Part shown: positions 5,341 through 62,973 of the stretch, one piece after another
Numbering within the stretch: position 1 is the stretch's first letter
Layout: every line of letters starts with the position of its first letter
From: Caecitellus pseudoparvulus
Lineage: Eukaryota > Protista > Bigyra: Bicosoecida
DNA: 64,000 nt
Assembly (NCBI GenBank): GCA_965644315.1
Contig: CBFFRQ010000084.1
Location: 1 to 64,000 of the forward strand
Reading direction: 5' to 3'
The notes under the pieces: generated by a model
What the model saw: only the letters and a program-made list of their open reading frames with translations
Databases searched by the model: none
Told to the model about the DNA's origin: nothing
Program-made: the position numbers and the translations under genes

Positions 5341-5514
5341 CGGCACGAAACGCCAACGAAACGCGAGCGAGGCCGAGGTCTGCCCAGTGCCGCAAAAGAC
5401 TCCGATGGGAAAGAGAACACCAAATATAGACATAAAAGTACCTGTTTGATAAAGTGGAAGCGCCCTTCTGATTGCCTAGCCCCTCCATGCCATAGGCTGG
5501 TTCGGAGTGCAGCG

Positions 5515-5521
5515 AAAAAAA
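5515..5521 (-). terminator. RNA Pol III oligo-dT terminator of tRNA-Lys
   Basis: A run of 7 T on the minus strand, 1 nt after the tRNA 3' end. Confidence 0.8.
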
Positions 5522-5522
5522 G

Positions 5523-5595
5523 CACCTCACACGGGTCTCGATCCCGTGACCGTACGATTAAGAGTCGTACGCTCTACCAACTGAGCTAGCAAGGT
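5523..5595 (-). tRNA. tRNA-Lys (anticodon CTT)
   Basis: ACCTTGCTAGCTCAGTTGGTAGAGCGTACGACTCTTAATCGTACGGTCACGGGATCGAGACCCGTGTGAGGTG folds into a 73-nt cloverleaf. The anticodon loop is CT-CTT-AA and the discriminator is G73. Confidence 0.95.
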
Positions 5596-5643
5596 ATTTC
5601 ATGCTTGGGGAGGGAAAATTTGCGTAATTCATCACCATTTGCT

Positions 5644-8600
5644 TCATTGACTAGCCGCAGCACCTTCGAGTTCGCTCTGCTTCCGCTCAATGGCTTGGGG
5701 GGTGGGCGGCTCAGCACCCACCACTTCGGAAATCAGCTCGTCCAGCGCAAGCTTCTTGAAGCCCACTGCGCTGGTCTGCTTCTTCATGCCCCGCCGCAGC
5801 CACCTCAAGTGCGCCTCTGGCTCCGCTGAGCCAATCACGGACGCCACACGCAACAGCGCCTCCTCTACCGTGCGCATGCACCCTGTGACGTCCTCAGGTC
5901 CGTGTGGGGATGTTGGCTCCACGTCGCCACCGAGCAGGCTGCAGTAGGTGGCCTGTGTCACGGCACACAGCGGCAGGCCCGTGCTGGCTGCACTCTTCAA
6001 TTCGGGCGTTTCTTCGCCGGTCCACGACAGCCGAACACGCGCACTGGACTCCACTTTCTCCTTGAAACTGTACAGAGCGAGAGAAATGCGGTTCAGCAAC
6101 TGCACCGTGCTGGGAGGGCACGCGGAGCTGCCCAGCATGGTCAGCTCGCCCTCGGCAACGCTGACAAGCCAGTCAATCACCCGCCCCTCAAAACGCTCTT
6201 GCTCCGAGGGGCTGCCAGAGGACTTAAACCAGCCAGAACTAGCCTCGCCTGCACCTTCATCCACATCCTGCGCGGCGCCGTGCAGCTCCGCGTCATCGTA
6301 TTTCTCCTTGGCAAAGTCAGCTTGCCCAGCGAACGCAACGCCCCGCACGCCAGCCAGAATCACCTGCGCCAACTGCACAGCGCCCTGCCCCCCCCGCAGC
6401 AACTGCTCTCGCATGTGCCCACGGTCCACACCGGCACTCTTCAGCGCCTCCAGCGCCGCAGCCACGACGATGCACACCAACTGCCGTGCCAGCAATGCCT
6501 GCGCAGGCCCCTGCAATCGCAACGCACACGGCGAAGCCCATACAGCCCCCTGCCCCACCAGCGGCGACTGCAGGGCGTCTCCGTCCTCGCCATCGCTGCC
6601 GCCACCCACATCGCTGCCGTCTTCCGGCGTCTCCTCGCCGTGGTCTGCGCGAGGCTGCCGCACCAGCTCCTTGAACTGTGCGGGGTCCCACACCTTCACA
6701 AGCGCCATGAGCAGGCGACCAGCCGAGCTCGGGACGTGCGTCGTGTCCACAGCATGTGGCGACAGCCCGAGGGCAGTCAGCAGACTGAACGCCCGCAAGT
6801 GCTCGATGCGGCGCAGTGCCTCATAGCTGCCCGAAGCGCCGCCAAACCACCGCATGCCGTCGGGCGGGTCCAGCTCTTCAAGGGACGCCTCTGTCAGTTC
6901 ATCCTGTTCTCGGGCCACGATGGCCGTGGCCAGAACACGCGCGAACAGGGAGCCCGTGGCGTCCCCTGCCAGGCCGAACTGCTCGCCCTCCCCCTCGTCG
7001 CCGCCCCCTGCCAGAGTCACGTGCACCATGGACAGCGGAACACTGCCCTCATCCTCCTGCCCAGAGGCGGCACTGGACACCTGCCCTGACTCCCCGCCTG
7101 CCAAGTCCTCGGGCGACGTGCAGGGGTCTTCCGCCTGTCCGCTGCCATTGCGCAGGAGTGTCGTGACTTGCCCGGTGAGCGCTGCGTAGGGCGGGTGAGG
7201 CGGGTAGAAGGCCCACTTACCGGCGGCCCGTGTAGTGCTCAACCACGCATCCCGCCGCACCTCCCCGACTGCAGTCAGAACAGCGTCCATGGCCAGGGTG
7301 CGCAGGAGCTCCGACACGGCAACGTGTGTTCCGGACTCGCCCCACTTGTTCCAGGAGTCACTGTCGTCCAGCGCATGCAGCGTGTCCCATGTCGCCGGCA
7401 TCAGCCCACGCATGCACCCCCACAGCAAATCCAGGCGGTGCAACTCAGGCACGGCCGGGCAACCCTCCAACCCCGCCGCCTCTCCCCGCACCGCCTCCAC
7501 CTCGCACTGCTCAGAGACGTCGTGCAGGTCGTGGAATGTCACCTGCACGTTCTCCGCCTGCAGGCTGCTGACGCTGTTCGCGGCGGAAGGCGGCAGCGGG
7601 AACTGACTCGCCTTCGCGGAGTCAGCCGAGGCACTCCCACTCGGAACAGGCCGCGGAGGGGCGAGGCCGAACACTGAGCGCCCCCACTGGTTCGCACTTC
7701 GTAGTTCCGCCCTGGACACGTGGCGCTGGGCGCCGTACTCGCGATCTGCGATGAACTCTTGCCGGTGCCGTGCCTCGGTGTCATCGTTCAGGGCGAAATG
7801 ACTCAGGCGCCGAATGAGGTCCTTCCAATCCTGCCGTGGCGCTACCGACGCCCAGTTCTGCATGCACGGTGACGAGGCGTGCAGCAGCACCGCGGCACGC
7901 GCCATGCGTTTCAGGCTCTGTGCCAGCAAGATGCCGCGCTTGAACTGGCTCACGTTGGCAGGCTCAGCGACGTCCCCCAGACTGAGCGCAGGCAACACCA
8001 GGGCCATGTCCAGGTGCCTGCCTGTGCGCACAGCTGACGCCATGGCGATGGAGTTGTCGTACAGAATGCCTCGCAGGAGCTGCTCACGGACCCGGTGTGT
8101 GACGGCGCGGCGGTCCTCGCCGAAACCCTCCCCATTGGCCGCCCACAGCTCATTCACCCACGGGACGACGTGCATGGGGTGCAGGAAGATGGGCCGGCGG
8201 TGGGATCCAGGCGGTACTTCTGGCTCCAGGTCCATCAGGCTCAAGATGGACCGCATGGGGACGATGTCCACCTCGAACCAGTGGTGCACCAGGCGCCAAA
8301 ATGCCGCACACTCCCGCAGCTCAATGCTGACGAGCGGCAGCAACAGCTGCCGCATGGGGCGGTCCATGCCCAGCAACAACATGGCGTGCCTGGCCGCGCT
8401 CAGCATCTGTGACTCCCCGTATAGCCCCAGCAGGCGGTCCCAGCAGCCCACCTTGGCGTCCACGTGGTCGGGGGGCAGCGGCAGCCACGGCTCCTTGCCA
8501 CGTGGCTTCGCCACCAACACGTGCACGGGGCGCAGCAGCATGAAGCCGACGACGGCGTAGGAGACAGCAATGCCCCACAGGACAACGGAGATGACGCCGT

Positions 8601-9888
8601 TGGCCACGTCTTGGGGGTGGATGCAGGTGGCCAGCAGCGTGCAGGTGTGGGCGCCGCTGGGCAGAGTGAAGAGGCAGTCGAAAGACCCGCCCACATTCAC
8701 CAGGGCGAGGTCAGTGCTGCCACTGTCGTCTTCAGACCTGGGGATCGTCCCCGCCGCGCGCCCACACCGCAGCGCCAGGGGAATGTACACACTCAAACAT
8801 GCCAGCACAGTGTAGCTGATGGTGAGCAGGACCAGGAACCCACGAATGCCCAAGTGCCCGCAGCCCCGGCGAGCACCTGACATCCACAGGCAAGCACTGC
8901 CCGGGTACACTCGTTTGGGCTTGCATGCACACAACAGCCTGCGCAGCATGAGGAAGTACTGGCTCGTTGACGTCGCCATGGGCCAGTCCTTGCGCGCAGC
9001 GTACACCGGCGCAAGCAGAGCTGCAATGGCCTTGTGCAGCCGCACAGCCGCCAAGTTCCGCCGCACAAACTCGTCGTACACTTGCCGCCGCACAGGCATG
9101 TAGTTCAGCACGGCCCCCGGCGACGGGAACTTGGGCGGCGTGCGGGTCATGCTCGTGGGCTCGTCGCCCCGCTGGCCGAAACCGGTGAGGAGGGAGTAGT
9201 GCCGCTGCACCAGCAGCCAATTGCTGCCCTCCAGCACGGCAGACTCGCCTGAGGCGAGGTCGGCCAGCTGTTCTTCGATTTCGTGGAAATGTGTGCCCAG
9301 CTGCACTGTAATGGTGCCCAGCAAGCTCACCATGGCGTGTTTGATGAAGAAGTACAGCAGCGCCAGCGACAACTGCAGAAACGTCGCTGCCGCAGTGATG
9401 TCCACCATGGCAGCTTCAATGCAAGGGTATGCGTTCGGAACCAGGTGGGTGTGGGCCAGAGTCAAGTTGGTGCCGCCTGCGCCCGCCTGCGTGGCGTTGA
9501 CACCGCCTGGCAGCCGGGCTCCTGTCTGGGCCCATACCGGAAACGCATCCAAGTCAAAGCCACGGTCACTCCACGCACCCAGCGTCCCACCATCGGAGCA
9601 AGAGGTGGAAGCGGCTGCGGCAAAGAAAGGCCGTGTGCCCAGGGCGGTGCAGTCTTCAAAGGGCGGCAGCGGGTTTGCGCCGTAGCTGCTGTCGTCTGGG
9701 CCAAGCCCTCGCGCAGTGCACGTCGTCGAGTACGATTCGCGAAGGTACAGCACAGTGCCAAAGAGCGTTGCAGAGGAGGTGAGGGCAATGAGGCCAAACC
9801 TCTCACTCCACAGGAAGCGTGCATTGCCCTCCTTGGCGCTGCTGGTGCTGCTCACCAGCGCAGAAAGAGCTGCTCCTGCTGCAGCCAT
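5644..9888 (-). CDS. Large 4-TM membrane protein, putative innexin/pannexin/LRRC8-like channel domain plus a long cytoplasmic C-terminus
   Basis: Intronless ORF, first ATG at 9888. Four hydrophobic segments with Cys-containing loops between TM1-2 and TM3-4. The second loop reads FDCLFTLPSG...TCIHPQDVANGVI. The CDS is confident; the family call is tentative. Confidence 0.6.
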   Translation of the reverse strand: MAAAGAALSALVSSTSSAKEGNARFLWSERFGLIALTSSATLFGTVLYLRESYSTTCTARGLGPDDSSYGANPLPPFEDCTALGTRPFFAAAASTSCSDGGTLGAWSDRGFDLDAFPVWAQTGARLPGGVNATQAGAGGTNLTLAHTHLVPNAYPCIEAAMVDITAAATFLQLSLALLYFFIKHAMVSLLGTITVQLGTHFHEIEEQLADLASGESAVLEGSNWLLVQRHYSLLTGFGQRGDEPTSMTRTPPKFPSPGAVLNYMPVRRQVYDEFVRRNLAAVRLHKAIAALLAPVYAARKDWPMATSTSQYFLMLRRLLCACKPKRVYPGSACLWMSGARRGCGHLGIRGFLVLLTISYTVLACLSVYIPLALRCGRAAGTIPRSEDDSGSTDLALVNVGGSFDCLFTLPSGAHTCTLLATCIHPQDVANGVISVVLWGIAVSYAVVGFMLLRPVHVLVAKPRGKEPWLPLPPDHVDAKVGCWDRLLGLYGESQMLSAARHAMLLLGMDRPMRQLLLPLVSIELRECAAFWRLVHHWFEVDIVPMRSILSLMDLEPEVPPGSHRRPIFLHPMHVVPWVNELWAANGEGFGEDRRAVTHRVREQLLRGILYDNSIAMASAVRTGRHLDMALVLPALSLGDVAEPANVSQFKRGILLAQSLKRMARAAVLLHASSPCMQNWASVAPRQDWKDLIRRLSHFALNDDTEARHRQEFIADREYGAQRHVSRAELRSANQWGRSVFGLAPPRPVPSGSASADSAKASQFPLPPSAANSVSSLQAENVQVTFHDLHDVSEQCEVEAVRGEAAGLEGCPAVPELHRLDLLWGCMRGLMPATWDTLHALDDSDSWNKWGESGTHVAVSELLRTLAMDAVLTAVGEVRRDAWLSTTRAAGKWAFYPPHPPYAALTGQVTTLLRNGSGQAEDPCTSPEDLAGGESGQVSSAASGQEDEGSVPLSMVHVTLAGGGDEGEGEQFGLAGDATGSLFARVLATAIVAREQDELTEASLEELDPPDGMRWFGGASGSYEALRRIEHLRAFSLLTALGLSPHAVDTTHVPSSAGRLLMALVKVWDPAQFKELVRQPRADHGEETPEDGSDVGGGSDGEDGDALQSPLVGQGAVWASPCALRLQGPAQALLARQLVCIVVAAALEALKSAGVDRGHMREQLLRGGQGAVQLAQVILAGVRGVAFAGQADFAKEKYDDAELHGAAQDVDEGAGEASSGWFKSSGSPSEQERFEGRVIDWLVSVAEGELTMLGSSACPPSTVQLLNRISLALYSFKEKVESSARVRLSWTGEETPELKSAASTGLPLCAVTQATYCSLLGGDVEPTSPHGPEDVTGCMRTVEEALLRVASVIGSAEPEAHLRWLRRGMKKQTSAVGFKKLALDELISEVVGAEPPTPQAIERKQSELEGAAASQ

Positions 9889-10152
9889 GGGTGTGCGGAA
9901 TCTGCTCCAAGCTCCCACACGAGGCCAAGCTGCTCACAGCCGCACCCTGCTCCTAAACAGCAGGTGTAGCATGAAAATGGTATCAACAAGTTGTGCGTTT
10001 CATTTCGAACACAGAGGGGGGTGCAGGAATGTGCGCAAGTCGCGCAACTGCGGCTGCAGGCTGGAGCACTTGCAGCCAGGCAGACGGCTCCCAACCGCAG
10101 AGTGCCCACGTCTCACCAACCCACGGTGCCTTCCTTGCCCAGCCCACGGCGC

Positions 10153-11172
10153 TCACTGCAGCTCCTTCTCTTCAAACGTCGCCCACGCCTTGTTCAGGGC
10201 CTGGAACACCTCGCTCGCAATGTACTCCTGGTCAGGGTTGGTGTCCCGGTTCTTGTCCGGGTGCACGATGCGGCAGGCCTTGAAGTAGGGGATGCGCACC
10301 TTCTTGGCGTCCACCAGCGCGCTCATGCTGACGCCCTTCCACTGCGGCTTGGCTTCTTCCCACAGGATCTTGCCCAGGTTGCTCAACAGGGCGCGAATGT
10401 TCCGCACCTCACCCGCAGCGTCATACCCCCATGCCTTCACCTCTGCCTCCAGCTTCTGCCGGGACGCGTCAAGCTCCTGCAGATGTGCTGCGGCAGCCGC
10501 CTGTGCCGCGCCCACGGCGCCCACTGCGGCAGCTGCCGAGGCAGCCTCAGCGCGCAGGCGCTTCACGATGGCGATTTGCACGGAGCGCGGCTTGCCCTTG
10601 TGCTCAGCTGGCACCTCTGCCGCGTACAGCTCGTAGTCCTCTTCGGGCACAGCTGGGGCAGGGGCTTGGGTCGCTGGAGGGGGCGTGCCTGCCGCACGCG
10701 GGGTGCCGGGGCGGGGACTGGCTTGGGGAGGGGGCGAGGCGGCTGCGCTGGGCCCAGAAGTCGCAGTCATGGCGCCACCTGACCGCAGCGTGAGTCCAGA
10801 TCCCTTGGGCAGGACACACTTGGCCTTGTCTGCGGTGGGCGTGGGAAAGAGGGGGGTGCAGGGGGGCGGGTGTGCCAGCCAGCGTCACCAGCACTCACCT
10901 AGCCGCAGCACCTTGGCATGCACGTTACCGCCCAGGGTGGGCACCTCTTGATCAGGCTCCAGGACATCCAGGTACGCATGGCTATCTCCCACAGGCACCC
11001 GGAAACGGAAGTGAAATGTGCCCAGCCCGTGCAGCGGGAAGCTCTCGTGCACGTCTTGCAGCGTCGGGGCTTTCCCCGGTGCGATGGGCAGGCGGTACGC
11101 ATTTGGACGCCCCGCCGTCTCGCCCTCCTCGTTCTGCAGGTGGTAGAAGCACAGACTCGCTTTGCCCGGCAT
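10153..11172 (-). CDS. DIX-like domain plus auxilin-type J-domain protein (intron 10830-10898)
   Basis: N-terminus CFYHL..PNAY..TLQDVHESFP..FHFRFR..YLDV..VPTLGGNVHAKVLRL is DIX/ubiquitin-like. C-terminus RNIRALLSNL..LW..WKGVSMSALVD..KVRIPYFKACRIVHPDK is an auxilin/Swa2 J domain. Confidence 0.85.
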
Positions 11173-11511
11173 GGTGCTAGGGTGTGCTGGAGGTTCAACG
11201 CAGGTGCGCAGGCACTGGCAGGCTGGGAGGTTGGTGTGGATTGCGCGAAACGCAGGTAAAACTCTGCAGATCAGGCAGCCAGCGATAAAGCACTGGAGCG
11301 GCAAGTAGGCGGGGCGAGGCATGTAGAGGGGGTGAATAAAATAATCTCAAATTCCAGTTGCCCGCGAGCCACCCCCTGTGCACAGGCCCCTCCACACACC
11401 CGGCTCTCGACAGCACGGCCGCACCAGCAGCGGCTTGGCGTGTTTGCTGCTTGTGTCCTTGCAAGCACGGTTCAGGCGCCGCAGGCCCCCCCAACCACAC
11501 TCCCGTCCGCC

Positions 11512-12352
11512 ATGGCTGGAGGCATCATGGAGTACAATGGCGGTGCCATCGTCGCCATGACCGGAAAGGACTGCGTCGGCATTGCCACGTGCGTTGGCGT
11601 TGCGAGGGTGCTGACATGGTGAAACGCCACCTTCCGCACACCGCGTCCCATGCGCACCACCTGCAGAGACACGAGGCTAGGCGTGCAGCTGCAGACGGTG
11701 GCGACAGACTTCAACAAGATCTTCTCCATGCACGACAAGCTCATGGTGGGCCTCACCGGCCTGGGCTCCGACGTCCAGACAATGTGCGTGGTGCTGGCGG
11801 CGTGTGTGTCCTGGCCCCCCCTCGCACCGCGCTTCTGCCCTCGCCGCAGGGCTGAGAACTTGCGCTTCCGCACCAACATGTACAAGTTCAAGGAGGAGCG
11901 GGACATCTCCCCCAAGACCTTCATGAACATGGTCTGCAGCATGCAGTACGCCAAAAGGTGAGCCGCCGCAGTGGCGTCGCCTGCCAGTGTGTCCAGCGCC
12001 CCTGCACACACCCCCACTTCTCCACGATGGCAGGTTCGGCCCTCTGTTCGCGAACCCTGTCGTGGCGGGGCTGGACGCGGAGGACAAGCCTTTCATCTCA
12101 GCTTCGGACGTTGTGGGTGCGCCTGTGTTCACGGACGACTTCGTCGTGTCAGGAACGTGCACAGAGAACCTGTACGGCACCTGCGAGAGCCTGTACGAGA
12201 AGGACATGGAGCCAGACCAGTTGTTCGAGACTCTGGCGCAGTGCCTATTGGCTGCTGTGGACCGTGATGCGTTGTCCGGGTGGGGCGGCGTCGTGCACAT
12301 CATCACTCCCACTGGGGTCTCCAGCAAGACCTTGAAGGCTCGCCAGGACTGA
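11512..12352 (+). CDS. PSMB3: 20S proteasome subunit beta-3 (introns 11589-11666, 11784-11849, 11958-12033)
   Basis: Motifs IMEYNGGAIVAMTGKDCVGIA, GLTGLGSDVQT, RFGP, DFVVSGTC, AVDRDALSGWG and the C-terminal LKARQD. Confidence 0.97.
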
Positions 12353-25977: not shown

Positions 25978-28900
25978 ATGGCTACGCCGCCCAGCGCGAG
26001 CTCCATTGCAGCGGCTGCTGCGGGGAATGTGCCAGGGCCACCGTCACCCAGCACACGCCCACGCAGCCCAAAGGGGGGCGCAAGAGGCGCTGTTTCCTTC
26101 TTCGATGAGGACGATGAGCAGCTGCCCGAGCCAGCACCCTCGGCCAAGGCCGGGCCTGCGCCGCGTGGCGGACTTGCTGCGGGCTCACGGCACGGTGCAG
26201 GCATGCAGAAGCAGCCCACCGCAACGCTGGCTGCGGTGGACGAGGGGAGCGGGGACGGGGCAGGGGGCAGACGGGCTCCCTCCCTCGCCAATGTGTGCGT
26301 GCTTGCAGCTCAGCGTGGCGCCGCTGTGCGCGTTGGTGTCTGCGCGTGAAACGCCGGGCTCGTCGCTGTCCCGGCAACGCCAGGCGCCACCCCGCCGACG
26401 CATTGCCGCCGCCCCAGCACGCCACACCGCCGTTGCATTCACAGGGGACGGCGCAGTTCCATGCGCAGGCGGCGGGAGTCCTTTGCCTCGCAGTTCAAGG
26501 CGGCAACCGGCGCAACAGAGGCGTCTGCGGCCACCTCCAGCACCACCATGCTGATGCAGTCCCAGAGCAGCACCGCACGGCAGCAAAACGTGCACAAGGC
26601 CAAGCACCAGTACATTGTGGGGAAGCTGCTGTCAGACCGCGTGGGCAAGGCGCGCCAGCCGCGCTCAGCCAGCCGCTTCACTGTCATGCACAACCGCAAC
26701 ACGGGAGAGATGCTGGGCCTGCCAGTGCGAGAAGGGCTGCAGTCCCTGTACAAGATCGCCCGCGACAAGTCCATTGCGGAGTGCCTGCTGTTTGTGCTGC
26801 TGCTGGCCTGCTTCATCATCTCCTGCACGCTGTTGTTCCCCGTGCACAAGATGTACGGCTCTGCCGCCGCCATCTCTGACCTCATCCTGGACGAGGAGTT
26901 CCCTGGCGCCCAGTACAAGAAGAACTTCTATGAGATCATGACGTACGACGAGTGGTGGACGTGGGCTCGAGGGCCGCTGCTGAACGGCCTGTATCCCACT
27001 GAGTTCTACAACGGCGAGCCCATCCCGCCCCTACAGCGCCCCTACGTTCTGGGGCTCTTTCGGGTGGTTGGCGGCGTTTCTTTCCGCCAGCTGCGCGTCA
27101 GCAATGACTCCTGCTCCGTGCGGCGCTTTGTGGAGAACTGCGTCGAGCGGTGCAAGCCTGCACAGCACCTGTGCAATGGTGATCAGAGCAAGTGGAGGCC
27201 CAACGTCACCCAGTGCGAGGCTGACTTGGGGCCGGGTGCTGGGCTGTGCTGTGAGGGGCGTTTTGACACCATTGGTGGCGTGTGCTACTCCGAGTTCACC
27301 AAGACGCGGCAGGACACTGAGCCCATGGTGCGGCCATCACGCACGTACTACTGGAGTGGCGACAACTCCAATGTGGAGGGTTTGTTCGGGTACGGCCCGG
27401 AGTACGGCACTGGCGGGTACGTCACCATTTTGGACCCCCTGAACCGCACCGCAGCAGAAGCCACCCTGACAGACATGTTCCACGACCGGTGGATCGACCC
27501 CGCGACACGCGCAGTGGTGGTGACGTTCTCCCTGTACAACACCCAGTCCCGCATCCTCAGCGTGTTCCGTGTTCTGACTGAGTTCTACCCCGACGGCAAC
27601 CTGGTGTCGTCTGTGAAAACGTACGGCGCGCCGCTGGTGGTGTACCAGGGCTTCATAGACAACCTGCGGCGCGTGGTGGAGATTTTCTTCGTACTCTGCT
27701 GGCTGTTCTACCTGCAAAAGGAGGCGAAGCGGCTGTACCACACGACACCCGGGCGGTCGCCGTGGATCAAGTTCAAGAGCTGGGCCTTCAAAGCCCGCAC
27801 GCTGTACGAACTGTCCTGGACGACGGTGGCGGCTGTGCTCATGGCGTACTACATCCAGTTCGTCCTGGCACCCGTGCGCACGAATTTCGACGTGAACTCG
27901 CCCGTGTTCGTGGACTACTTCCCGCTGGCAGAGGCGTTCATCATCACCGGCACCATCGCCGGTGGGCTGGGCCTCATGTTCGCACTGCAGCTGTTCCAGT
28001 ACCTCGGCATCTCCCGCCGCTTCATCATCGTGTGGCTGACGCTGTACCACGCCGCCAAGGACCTGGCCGCCTTTCTCGTCTCCTTCCTCGTCCTCGTATC
28101 CGGCTTCTCCTTCATGGGGGAGATGTTCTTCGGGCCCTGGATCGAAGGCTTCAGGGACTTCTGGTTCGCCGCATCCACGCTGCTGCGGTACCCCCTGGGT
28201 GACTTCCAGTACCTCACCCTGACGTCAGCGCGCCCCGGTGTCGCGTGGCTGTTCTTCACTCTGTACGTCGCCATGGTGTTCCTGGTGTGCATGAACCTCA
28301 TCATTGGCATCATCACCAAGTACTTCCAGGAAGTGCACGACGACCTCAAAACCAGCGACAAGTGGAAACAGAGCACCGTGTCCCTGGAAGCGGAAAAACT
28401 GGCCGCCTGTGCGCGGTGGTGGCGCCTGCGCCGGCGCATGGCACGGGACTACTGCGCAGTCACCTGCCAGACCGCCTTCCCTTCCTGCTGCCCCCTCATT
28501 TGCTGCAACGCACGTGTCAAGTGCTGTGTGGCGTCCTACGTTGACAGCACGGGGGATGACGGGGAGCACGTCGAGTTCAAAGGCACCAGTCTGCCGCGCG
28601 CACTGGGCGGCTCCGGCTCCAAGCGTTTCAGACGCGGCACCCTGACGCCCGGAGCCGCTGACATCCTGAACGAACCCACGAAGGAGGAACAAGAAAAGGA
28701 GAGCTCCAAGGCACACCGGTTCCTGCAGCGGCAGGACAGCCGGCGCCTGCCCACGCTGCGCCGGCGCGCCACGACGAACCGCAATTTGGACGTTTTCGAG
28801 CAGCAACGCATGGCCCACGCAGACCAGCTGGAGAAGGACAACGAGGGCATGGCCAACGAGGCTGAGTTCTTTGCCTTGCTACGGCGCTGCGCCCGCGCCG

Positions 28901-29757
28901 CAAAGCGGCTGCACGACATCAACTTGCTGCGCTACTTCGAACGCGTGTATGCGGAAAATGCGACGGACTTCTTGTACATCGGGCTCATGGAGCTGTGTGC
29001 CCTGACGCAGCCGGCGCGAGGTGGCGTGCACATGAACCCCGATGCCCTGGCTGTGCGCCTGCTGACTGCGTACACAAAGTGGAAGCGTGTCATCATCGCC
29101 GGGCCAGCTCGCATGCACATGCGGTATGCGGAGGAAGTCACCTCCTTCAAGGACGAAGTGCCCAAGTTCGAAGTGAAGAAAATCAGTCGCAAGAAGCTGG
29201 GCATGCGGCAGTCACGCATGCTGTACGTGGACGAGGGGCGTGGCTTGCTGTACGTCTTCGACAAGCTCATGCGCCTGCGCCGGCGCCTGCCCCTGACCCA
29301 GCTCATTCAAATCCGCCGAGACTTGCGCAACGCCTGCCGCGTGGCGTTGGTGTTCACGTCCCAGGGCGTGCCTCTGGACGACGAAGAGCTGTTTGGGGGA
29401 CTGGAGACTGTCCTGCGTGTGGAGTTCGGGCGCGGCGACCGTGTGGAGAAATTCGTCCGCGTTGTGCGCCGCGTGCGCATTGAACTGGCTGCTGAGTACG
29501 CACGTCTGCAAGCCCAGCTGGGAGCAGGCGCCTTGGAAGGCATGAACCAGCGCATGAAGGACATGGGGCGCAATGGCGACGCGCGCGGCCAGAGCAAGCG
29601 CTCGGGCCGGCGCAAGGCAAAACGGCGTGGTGCGGGCGGCAAAAACCGCTCCAAGGGCGGTGGCGCAGCACGCAAGGGTGGCTCCACCACAGAGGGCCTG
29701 TGGGACACTTTTGCCGAGGAGGAGGCGAAACAAGCCCTGATGCGTGGTGCGATGTAG
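25978..29757 (+). CDS. PKD2: Polycystin-2 (TRPP/PKD2)-like cation channel (probable intron 26295-26444)
   Basis: Motifs WWTWARGPLLNGLY, FRQLRVSNDSC, YGTGGY, WIDPATRAVVVTFSLYN, six TM segments, pore TLLRYPLGDFQY, and MNLIIGII. Confidence 0.9.
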
Positions 29758-59544: not shown

Positions 59545-59865
59545 GAAGCTATTTCCGCACCTTTTTTGCTGAGATGCCGGACACCCCAACCTTGGGGGGG
59601 GTGCCCCCCTTGTGGACCCCCCCCCCCTTCGCCGCCCGTGTGCAAGGTGCTGAGAGACGCTCATCCTCCTCCCTCCGCCTGCTTGCCAGCGCTGGTCCCC
59701 GAGCAGGGTCAAGTGCCACTTTGCCATCAATGCACCAAATCATAACACTGTTTTGTATTTGAGGCTTGATATTTACGCCCCTAGGCTCCTGAACACAACC
59801 AGGTTCGTTTGCAACGGAGGTGCTGTCAGCCGGGGTTTCGGTCACGTTTCACTTTACGCCTCATC

Positions 59866-62800
59866 ATGGCAGAGGGCACGGCTGAGTCTGGGGAGGATGT
59901 GACTGTCGCTGAGCTCCCTCGAGCTGTTAGATTGTCAACTGAATTGAAGGTTTTCTTCCGCAACGGCTGCCTCTTGCGAGAGCTTTGCAGCCGGGAGGCA
60001 CTCCGTCACTTCTGCGACACCAAGACCAAGAATCAAGGGAAGGCTGCAGTTGAGAAGTGGAGGGCTGTGTGCCCAGATCTACGCATTGGCAACTTCCCCC
60101 TGCTTGCAATTCTTGGGCTGAAGGGTTGGAAGGCAAAAGGGAACAGTCTCGCGGATTTCCAGCGGTCAGATTCGCGCACTGGAAAACCAATCCTGTGGTC
60201 CGAGACCCTGAAGTGCTTCGTTGAAGCACGAAAGGAAACGCTTCTCAGAAAGCACCTGCCGGCCAAGCATCACATGACCAAGCAAGAAGTTCTTGCACTG
60301 GCCAAAACGTTCAGTGTTGAGAAGCCCATGAAAGCTCAGTCTGACAGTGAGGCATACAGAGCCCTGGGACACGTCACACGGAACCTCGTGCATGAGGCAC
60401 AGGTACTTGTCGAGTCAGTGCCTGTCTCGGGAGAGACGATCGCTCATGATAGCAAGTCTCACTCGCGAATCGCTCAAAAACTTCTGGTGCAGAACTTCGC
60501 TTCCTATGGGCTGTCGCCGCAACAGATTGCGAAGGTGATGTCCCCTGAGAACCACATGCTGATGACCGTATGGGGTTCAGAAGCCTCTTCAAGCACGATG
60601 TACAGGGACATTCGACAAGCAGCCGATGACATAACTGCTGATCTGCGCAAGAAGCTGGCAGAGAAACCAGAAGCCATGGTGTCCCTTCAAGTGGATGACA
60701 CAAGCATCAGCCACACGATGCTGAATTGTACTACAGTCGTGCTGTCATGCCCTTCGCTGCTTCCAGAGCCGATTCCTTGCCGAGTTTTCTTGAAGGTAGA
60801 TCATTCAGATGCCCGTGCAATCACGGAGCAGATCCTTGTGGTCCTGTACGAGCTGGATCTCAACCCAGCCAGACTGGCTGGGATTGTATGTGACAACGCC
60901 ACGGTCAATGTGAGGGCCATCAAAGACTTGCAACGCCTCGGCAGCGCAATCTCTGCGCTGCCTGCTGGTGAAAGCTGCCGTCGTGAAGTGGAATGCGCAC
61001 TTGGGCATCGCCTCGATGGTCTAACCAAGGAAGCTGCTGCTGCGCTCGGCCGCATTCAATGCCAGGAGGAAGTGAGAAGGCGAGATGCAGCAGGCCTGGG
61101 TGACGACTACTTTGACCTAAGTACACCTGTAGCTGCCACTCCTTCTCGGGATCCTGGACCTGAGGTTGAGATTGTTGATCCCGTCACAAATCTGACAAGG
61201 AGGGAGATTGAGGAAGCAGCTTCGACTGATTTCATGCGCGTGCGCGATGATTCTGTTCCACATAAAAAGCTGGACGAGAGCAAGGCTACATTTTGCCGAC
61301 GAGTGCTGTGTGAGTGGCTTGACTCCAGTTCTGTCAGGAAGGGGATGGCGAGCTTGGCACTGCTGCCACGCGTGCCCTGCATGGCACACTCGGCAGCATT
61401 GGCCGTGGGGGAAGTGTTCGACGAATTCGAGTGGGGTGTTGAAGTTTGTCAGCGCGTCAAAGACCTCTTTGCTGGCCAGAACCCTGCTCCCCATCGCGAG
61501 TCTGCCAAGGCGGCATCGGCTTACTCGTCTGACTACCTCTTCGCACCTACACGCTGGGGCAGTGTATGGAAAGCTGCGAAAGCGATCCTAATCAAAAGGA
61601 AGGCCTTGATTGCGTGGCTTTCAGCTCAGTCGCGTTCCGGCTCGGGGTCTAACACAACTGTGTTTGAGAACAAGGCAGAAAGGGCATTGAATAATCTGCG
61701 CAGGTTTGACACAATGCTGCAGCTTGCAGCAATGGTTGAAGTGGCAAGACCACTTGTGAGCATGATTGAAAAGTTGCAAAGTCACATGGGTCATGAGGGT
61801 GGTACAGAAATGTTTGCATTTGTTGAGAACAAGCTGAGAGAAATTAGACAAGGGCAACGTCAACCCACGCTCTCTGCTGAGGTACTCATAGTCGGTGCAG
61901 ACCGGGCAGGAAGAGCAAAGTGTCTAGCTGAGCTTGATGGGAGCTTTATACGTGACTCAGATTCTGCGAGAAGATACCTGCCAGCTCCGCAGCACGCTCG
62001 AGCAACCGCCGCTAAGTTGCGCCTCCAGGCTGCGGATCGGGGATGGAGGAAGCTCAAGGAGTGGGGCGCAGTCATCGCCGCCAGGTGGAAGCTCATGGAC
62101 CTGCTGCGCCCACGGCCAGACGCTGGTCTTCGCTTTGCACACCTCGAAAAGTCAGTCCCCAAGTACTACACGCACGCAGAGCCTGGGAAGCTTCCCCGTT
62201 CTGCTAGGTTCTGTGTTTTGGTCATGAACCTTTGCAGAGGGCAGATAAACCATGGACAAGAGCTGCTACACTTGTTGAACAACAACGTGGGGACTGCTTT
62301 GCAAATTGAGGAAGAGTGGCGTCACTTTGTCGCATACTGTGAGAGTCACCGAGAGCTTGCTTGCCTTGAGATCGGCAGCGATGGCAGAAAGCAAGCCGAG
62401 CCCTGCAAAGATCTGGAGGCATGGTGGAGAGAAAAACGAAGAACTTGGCCTCTCCTCTCCCGTATAGCGCAGGCATTGTACTCAACACCAGTCACAAGTG
62501 CAGGCGCTGAGCGCTTCTTCTCCGTGCTGACCGACTGGTGTGCCAGTGGCAAGAGGACCAGGGCACACACACAATTGCTTGGCAGCCAACTTCTGCTGCT
62601 TTCCAATCAGCAGTTTGTGACTCGGCGCATCAGGGACTGGCTGACCCCACGCTTCAAAGTGTGCAACTCTTCAGTCGACTCTGTTCGCCAGGAGCAGGGC
62701 CAGGCACTCGTCAAGGGCCTGGATGGGCTAGCTGGGCAGCTTGTTTCCTCTCGAGTTGCCCCTGCTGCGCGTGCATGCTCACTTGCCGGGGCTTCAGCTG

Positions 62801-62973
62801 CCCCTTCACGCCGGGCTGTTGGTGGCAAGAAGAGAGTCCGAGCGGGAGGAGCGCCTCCAAGCGGTCCCAAGAAGGCGCCGAGGTCCGGTGGAGGGAAGCA
62901 GGGAACGCTTGATGACGTGTGGAGAAACAGATCAGGTGCTGAAGATAGCATACCAATGCAAAGTTGGCTTTGA
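59866..62973 (+). CDS. hAT transposase
   Basis: Motifs SLQVDDTS (D), IVCDNA (D), CMAH (CxxH), TRWGS, and WWREK..WPLLSRIA..TPVTSAGAERFFS (E; hAT C-terminal domain). Confidence 0.95.
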   Translation: MAEGTAESGEDVTVAELPRAVRLSTELKVFFRNGCLLRELCSREALRHFCDTKTKNQGKAAVEKWRAVCPDLRIGNFPLLAILGLKGWKAKGNSLADFQRSDSRTGKPILWSETLKCFVEARKETLLRKHLPAKHHMTKQEVLALAKTFSVEKPMKAQSDSEAYRALGHVTRNLVHEAQVLVESVPVSGETIAHDSKSHSRIAQKLLVQNFASYGLSPQQIAKVMSPENHMLMTVWGSEASSSTMYRDIRQAADDITADLRKKLAEKPEAMVSLQVDDTSISHTMLNCTTVVLSCPSLLPEPIPCRVFLKVDHSDARAITEQILVVLYELDLNPARLAGIVCDNATVNVRAIKDLQRLGSAISALPAGESCRREVECALGHRLDGLTKEAAAALGRIQCQEEVRRRDAAGLGDDYFDLSTPVAATPSRDPGPEVEIVDPVTNLTRREIEEAASTDFMRVRDDSVPHKKLDESKATFCRRVLCEWLDSSSVRKGMASLALLPRVPCMAHSAALAVGEVFDEFEWGVEVCQRVKDLFAGQNPAPHRESAKAASAYSSDYLFAPTRWGSVWKAAKAILIKRKALIAWLSAQSRSGSGSNTTVFENKAERALNNLRRFDTMLQLAAMVEVARPLVSMIEKLQSHMGHEGGTEMFAFVENKLREIRQGQRQPTLSAEVLIVGADRAGRAKCLAELDGSFIRDSDSARRYLPAPQHARATAAKLRLQAADRGWRKLKEWGAVIAARWKLMDLLRPRPDAGLRFAHLEKSVPKYYTHAEPGKLPRSARFCVLVMNLCRGQINHGQELLHLLNNNVGTALQIEEEWRHFVAYCESHRELACLEIGSDGRKQAEPCKDLEAWWREKRRTWPLLSRIAQALYSTPVTSAGAERFFSVLTDWCASGKRTRAHTQLLGSQLLLLSNQQFVTRRIRDWLTPRFKVCNSSVDSVRQEQGQALVKGLDGLAGQLVSSRVAPAARACSLAGASAAPSRRAVGGKKRVRAGGAPPSGPKKAPRSGGGKQGTLDDVWRNRSGAEDSIPMQSWL

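Follow-up and report, generated by a model that had tools for sequence, protein, structure and literature searches.

We analysed a 64,000-nt stretch of the genome of the marine flagellate Caecitellus pseudoparvulus (contig CBFFRQ010000084.1, positions 1 to 64,000; hereafter the window). A gene on its minus strand encodes a large protein with four predicted transmembrane helices (TM1 to TM4). A sequence-only reading of the window had proposed a divergent large-pore channel of the innexin/pannexin/LRRC8 type at positions 8530–9888. We observed that all motifs quoted in that reading lie within one minus-strand frame that opens at the ATG at 9888. The proposed extent covers amino acids (aa) 1–453 of this frame, but the real frame is about three times longer and reaches its stop codon at 5644 after 1,414 aa. 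The features of the gene are as follows.

5644–9888, minus strand: whole coding frame, 1,414 aa, ATG at 9888 and stop at 5644; intron not evident
9799–9888, minus strand: short cytosolic N-terminus, aa 1–30, with a predicted helix at aa 2–16 (models, charge; pore-lining role by analogy)
9742–9798, minus strand: TM1, aa 31–49 (hydropathy)
9400–9741, minus strand: outer loop 1, aa 50–163, with C57, C80, C97 and C156 and the N-glycosylation sequons N131 and N141
9310–9399, minus strand: TM2, within aa 164–193 (hydropathy)
8851–9309, minus strand: cytosolic loop, aa 194–346, with long predicted helices, basic ahead of TM3 (models, charge)
8770–8850, minus strand: TM3, aa 347–373 (hydropathy, unseeded model)
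8596–8769, minus strand: outer loop 2, aa 374–431, with C375, C405, C416 and C422 and a predicted beta-hairpin at aa 402–422 that ends in C-x-H-P
8524–8595, minus strand: TM4, aa 432–455 (hydropathy, unseeded model)
5647–8523, minus strand: orphan C-terminal region (tail), aa 456–1414, 959 aa
6442–6498, minus strand: hydrophobic stretch within the tail, aa 1131–1149, hydropathy peak 1.99; possibly a buried helix, possibly a further transmembrane segment

A gene under selection with a four-helix membrane part

The frame is present as a single copy in the genome, which is 30.6 Mb in size, GC-rich and gene-dense and has a short 18S gene (1,697 nt); no paralogue of either half of the protein was found in that genome. 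Marine ENA/Logan assemblies contain four near-identical proteins of the full 1,414 aa, and both ENA/Logan contigs that were read share a proteasome-subunit neighbour. When the gene is compared to two of these four, synonymous changes far outnumber non-synonymous changes (61:13 and 44:5). This excess is present in each third of the frame, and the membrane part alone gives ratios of 20:2 and 9:1. Furthermore, third codon positions hold 28 of the 36 listed strain differences (P = 6e-8). Purifying selection thus acts across the whole frame, including the tail. In four runs that cover positions 5500–10100, the frame is not broken by any frameshift and no joint is seen; these runs are all contigs and leave transcription unproven. 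The gene is real and under selection.

A tRNA-Lys(CTT) gene lies on the same strand at 5522–5595, only 48 bases past the stop codon, and no AATGCA poly(A) signal that would account for the 3' end of the mRNA is found between the two.

The topology claimed by the earlier reading was recovered. Hydropathy peaks at aa 31–49, 164–182 (with a shoulder to 193), 351–369 and 432–450, which places four helices within aa 31–455, and each outer loop carries the four cysteines listed above. Lysine and arginine make up 10–13% of the N-terminus, the middle loop and the first 60 residues of the tail, compared to 3.5% of loop 1 and 5% of loop 2. This distribution supports the prediction that both termini are cytosolic. 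Together with the two sequons in loop 1, it also argues against a cleaved signal peptide. Cysteines are more frequent in the two outer loops (4.7%) than in the cytosolic parts (1.6%; P = 0.015). TM1 is the most polar of the helices, with seven small or polar residues, of which T37, T41 and T45 form a stripe on one face. Proline is absent from aa 157–243, which includes TM2.

In the tail (aa 456–1414), we found no Pfam domain, no leucine-rich repeat (LRR) motif, no internal repeat and no look-alike in the Atlas. The fifth hydrophobic stretch, at aa 1131–1149, does not figure in the sequence-only reading; it is as hydrophobic as TM2, and a membrane crossing there would put the last 265 aa outside the cell.

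Resemblance to innexins, pannexins and LRRC8

An ESM feature search placed the innexin clan first: the ten best family-bearing matches all belong to the Innexin/Pannexin_like family or clan, with scores of 0.79–0.81, which we treat as a lead only, since one shuffled protein in three scores as high as 0.8. The result gains weight because it names the same family that had earlier been named from motifs, yet the two namings draw on the same features of the sequence.

Landmark spacings, measured by one method on the query and on fetched family members and compared post hoc, agree with the clan at several points. TM1 is centred at residue 40 (family medians 35–40), and C57 lies 17 residues past this centre (family 10–20). 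C156 lies 17 residues ahead of TM2, as in LRRC8 (17–24), whereas the innexin spacing is not matched. In loop 2, C405 and C422 are 17 residues apart (innexins 17, LRRC8 15), TM4 lies 19 residues past C422 (family 16–30), and the distance between TM3 and TM4 is 81 (innexins 79–94). Random placement of the cysteines reproduced all three cysteine agreements in 4% of cases when the counts per loop were fixed and in 0.6% when cysteines could fall anywhere.

At the level of residues, one unsupervised alignment matched W24, G43, T44, C113, E115, C295, C310, H312 and P313 of LRRC8A to identical residues of the query. Here, T45 is aligned to T44 of LRRC8A, which faces the pore in a channel with TM1 innermost (PMC6086657). 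C156 and F170 align with C113 and Y127, and C422-I-H-P aligns with C310-A-H-P; alone, these correspondences are not significant. An AlphaFold model built without family sequences was unreliable (predicted local distance difference test, pLDDT, 31); it contains two strands at aa 402–421 (pLDDT about 30) just ahead of TM4, and loop 2 of LRRC8A likewise has strands before TM4 (PMC6086657).

When comparing the protein to known channels, we find a different mixture of likeness and difference for each family. LRRC8 (SWELL1, the volume-regulated anion channel; PF12534) is the top ESM match and shares the short N-terminus, four helices, the long cytosolic loop and a large C-terminal domain. Furthermore, it shares a long loop 1 that closes with C-x-E some 14 residues ahead of TM2, the C-x-H-P before TM4 and the predicted loop-2 hairpin. 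Unlike LRRC8, the query has no profile similarity, no K-[YF]-F-P-Y motif, no LRR by Pfam or motif and no post-TM4 block; its loop 2 is longer (TM3–TM4 distance 81 compared to 49–58) and carries four cysteines. Innexins (PF00876) resemble the query in the position of TM1, the first cysteine, the length of loop 2 and the 17-residue cysteine spacing. They differ in that the query lacks YYQW and the TM2 proline, scores at the level of shuffles against the innexin hidden Markov model (HMM), carries the 959-aa tail and has a loop 1 about twice as long (TM1–TM2 distance 133 compared to 69–79). The two candidate cross-loop disulfides recall C66–C267 and C84–C248 of frog Panx1 (PMC7108861), and glycosylation sequons in an outer loop are likewise shared with pannexins 1–3. 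The match of a seeded model to PANX2, described below, is weak and circular, and by sequence the query matches none of the PANX chains. Trypanosomatid unnexins likewise have four helices with both ends inside and a unicellular host, and they too lack clear homology to the channels of animals at the sequence level. However, the outer cysteines, of which the query has eight, are missing from Unx1, and the YYQWV of Unx1 is missing from the query (PMC10400985); there is no sign of kinship.

Sequence, profile and structure tests

Membership in the clan was weighed against searches, profiles and models, and the negative results in this section, together with the frequency of high ESM scores among shuffled proteins, weigh against it. 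The Pfam comparison proposed by the sequence-only reading gave no match: the whole protein and nine fragments yielded no accepted family, Innexin and Pannexin_like included. A match to SPG48 (E 0.003–0.09) was below the cut-off and was rejected. Sequence searches of the PDB with the whole protein and its halves returned chance matches alone and no PANX chain. Word searches with the membrane part and the full length found the same species alone, and phmmer against 1.84 billion representatives found only the query itself. No relative was detected in a scan of metagenome peptides, and neither an innexin nor an LRRC8 was found in the genome of the flagellate.

For direct comparison, we used 116 animal innexins together with five LRRC8 membrane domains from non-mammalian vertebrates. 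These references were fetched with short degenerate motif baits, and only sequences returned by the searches were compared; one possibly human locus that resembles LRRC8B was kept out of the comparisons. A viral innexin from an IMG/VR contig served only as a single natural query and a positive check and was excluded from all alignments. Scores against profiles of these real families were null. The query scores -3.1 bits against the HMM of the 116 innexins, level with its shuffles, and hhalign against the family profiles gives E 0.56 (innexin) and 0.7. The best innexin piece in BLAST and hhalign is the last cysteine with TM4 (E 0.17 and 0.56). Ungapped innexin blocks in order (TM1, TM3 and last cysteine/TM4) score best at their predicted places (chain z 1.9–3.1); this signal was dropped, the gapped version giving z 0.7–1.6. 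The LRRC8 block test gives z of about 0, both ungapped and gapped, which is lower than for innexins and for some unrelated membrane proteins.

The motif resemblances of the earlier reading do exist, but they are weakened by shuffled controls. In every MAFFT run (12 of 12 and 15 of 15), C405 and C422 were aligned with the invariant cysteines of loop 2, and this was dropped as support because both fall on cysteines in 20–51% of shuffles. A supposed likeness to the post-TM4 helix of LRRC8 failed, as the conserved block is not at its predicted place. At the column of the TM2 proline, which is listed as conserved in innexins (PMC9949713) and is invariant in the fetched LRRC8 set, the query has T169. 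Moreover, the agreement at TM2 is lost when the T192I allele is used to locate the centre of the helix.

The same tests hardly connect the established families. The innexin profile picks up INX-6 and the pannexins in the PDB (pannexins at E 1e-7 to 1e-10) but not LRRC8, and the LRRC8 profile reaches pannexins at E 0.01–3 only, via the TM2 motif. Innexins and LRRC8 themselves are joined at hhalign E 0.08 and z 1–2.3; known kin reach z 1–2.3 against their own local shuffles in the block test, with raw scores above that of the query. Since these tests barely connect innexin to LRRC8, the null sequence results carry little weight.

The proposed monomer model and fold search gave no fold match, the unseeded model being too poor for a meaningful search. 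A second AlphaFold model was seeded with innexin and LRRC8 rows and is therefore circular. Its four helices reach pLDDT 69–79 and its hairpin 61–69, with a predicted template modelling score (pTM) of only 0.41, and neither Foldseek nor the Atlas returned a match. A wide search gave pannexin-2 (aa 48–320, 189 residues aligned, root-mean-square deviation 6.0) and connexin-43 (171 aligned, 6.1), tied at Z 4.6. They stand at ranks 45–46, with the longest alignments among the matches listed, and are tied with single-helix noise. That the seeded model did not adopt the fold is mild evidence against the channel fold, softened by a seed alignment that was shallow and partly misregistered.

Weighing the explanations

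The protein is best described as an orphan four-helix protein that no sequence or structure test tied to innexins, pannexins or LRRC8. We file it in no family because the innexin/pannexin tests (TM2 proline, profile), the LRRC8 tests (profile, LRR) and the unnexin tests all came out negative. The proposal of a divergent large-pore channel stands in part: the topology and the arrangement of cysteines agree with the plan of innexins, pannexins and LRRC8, and ESM ranks the clan first, but the profile and fold checks gave no support. The outcomes that would have spoken directly against it are not seen, as the topology is predicted to be four-helix with both ends inside and no unrelated family was matched. 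The likeliest single explanation, to which we give a probability of about 0.45, is a highly divergent subunit that has the fold of innexins, pannexins and LRRC8 and works as a non-junctional large-pore channel.

Beyond the topology, we infer the following arrangement for such a channel. Six to eight subunits would assemble as a ring around a pore that TM1 and the N-terminal helix line. On the model of frog Panx1, loops 1 and 2 would be tied via C57–C422 and C156–C405, with C80–C97 and C375–C416 as likely bonds within loops. The long, probably glycosylated loop 1 would block docking between cells; in pannexins glycosylation hinders docking, with exceptions among innexins (PMC8769644). The 959-aa tail would occupy the place of the LRR domain of LRRC8 and may gate the pore, and the channel could release anions, osmolytes or ATP from the cell, for example upon swelling.

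A close rival, with a substantial though smaller share of our belief, is a four-helix receptor or scaffold specific to this lineage, whose outer loops would carry disulfide bonds and glycans and whose cytosolic domain is large. It would be unrelated to large-pore channels and resemble them by shared topology. The statistical sequence tests, all null, are what this explanation expects, as are the absent TM2 signature, the poor uptake of the fold by the seeded model and a tail that makes up two thirds of the protein and has no counterpart in these families. However, ESM places the innexin clan over other four-helix families with cysteine loops, the landmark spacings and the loop-2 hairpin fit the clan, and the nulls weigh little for the reason given above.

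It is unlikely that the protein has the clan fold but is a non-conducting or organelle-resident derivative in which the tail does the main work. In its favour, the TM2 proline that is conserved in innexins (PMC9949713) and LRRC8 is lost, the position of R103 of LRRC8A is taken by P151, which is not basic, and the tail is very large. Nevertheless, the polar stripe of TM1 is kept, with T45 aligned to the pore-facing T44 (PMC6086657), and purifying selection on the membrane part is strong (20:2 and 9:1).

Still less probable is a distant member of another four-helix group, namely connexin, claudin/PMP22, CALHM, tetraspanin or unnexin. The search with the seeded model puts connexin-43 level with pannexin-2 (Z 4.6), and the C416–C422 spacing recalls loop 2 of connexins. 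Connexins, however, have three cysteines per loop. Pfam matches none of these groups, the tetraspanin CCG is absent, and an unnexin with YYQWV and without outer cysteines is the reverse of the query (PMC10400985).

A wrong gene model, with no gene at all or with the four-helix part and the tail as separate or spliced products, is hardly credible: the RNA evidence is not clean, as the runs labelled RNA consist of contigs, possibly of DNA, but the 4.2-kb open frame, the strain differences at third positions (28/36, P = 6e-8), the synonymous excess in all three thirds and the absence of frameshifts and joints speak against it.

Neighbouring sequences and significance

Next to the gene, window positions 10153–11322 encode a weak DIX-like piece (PF00778) ahead of an auxilin-type J domain, probably as one spliced gene. 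The auxilin-like J protein and a proteasome beta subunit (10153–10770 and 11650–12352) have near-identical copies at NCBI that are labelled Symbiodinium sp. KB8, on contigs of 1.7–5.5 kb. These copies suggest that the Symbiodinium sp. KB8 assembly carries DNA from this flagellate or a close relative. Further along the window, a polycystin/PKD-type channel of 1,098 aa lies at 26461–29757. A frame of 1,054 aa, likely a DNA transposase, lies in a lower-GC region at 59809–62973 and carries a hAT dimerisation domain. Elsewhere in the genome, the main 18S array is on contig C81. A second, lower-scoring 18S-type gene is found in pieces on contig C91 (18239–19866), and a small-subunit gene (451 bits) on contig C213 (27842–29337); these extra genes possibly stem from a second organism, a divergent copy or an organelle.

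The viral innexin used as a check is intact and intronless (391 aa; PF00876, 325 bits) and lies at 10646–11821 of the 181-kb IMG/VR contig IMGVR_UViG_3300031563_000001. It adjoins RNA polymerase Rpb1, Pox_VLTF3, Pox_A22 and a SNF2-type helicase, which marks the contig as large DNA virus-like. Its nearest relatives are annelid innexins (45–48% identity). Viral innexins are known from ichnoviruses, and this one looks like a separate capture.

According to a review, innexin/pannexin junctions are animal-specific and absent from unicellular and colonial eukaryotes (PMC9816575). Trypanosomatid unnexins provide a precedent for non-animal candidates (PMC10400985), and they are the only protist large-pore channels that we found in the literature, in a search of incomplete coverage. 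The relevance to the origin of gap junctions that the sequence-only reading had suggested would need homologues and a tree before it could be claimed, and for as long as neither homologues nor a structure are at hand, the protein counts as a candidate rather than a discovery. We hold it as a tentative idea, at somewhat short of even odds, that it represents a fourth innexin/pannexin/LRRC8 branch outside animals, in a probable stramenopile, in which the disulfide-tied outer cap is kept and a new 959-aa gating domain replaces the LRRs. If true, the fold would predate the origin of animals or would have been acquired by an old transfer, and the pore would have been paired with a large cytosolic regulator a second, independent time. 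If the fold were confirmed, the novelty would lie in the unusual host and the new tail. The presence of a cysteine-capped member of the clan in a free-living marine flagellate would then bear on the origin of ATP-release and volume-regulated channels.

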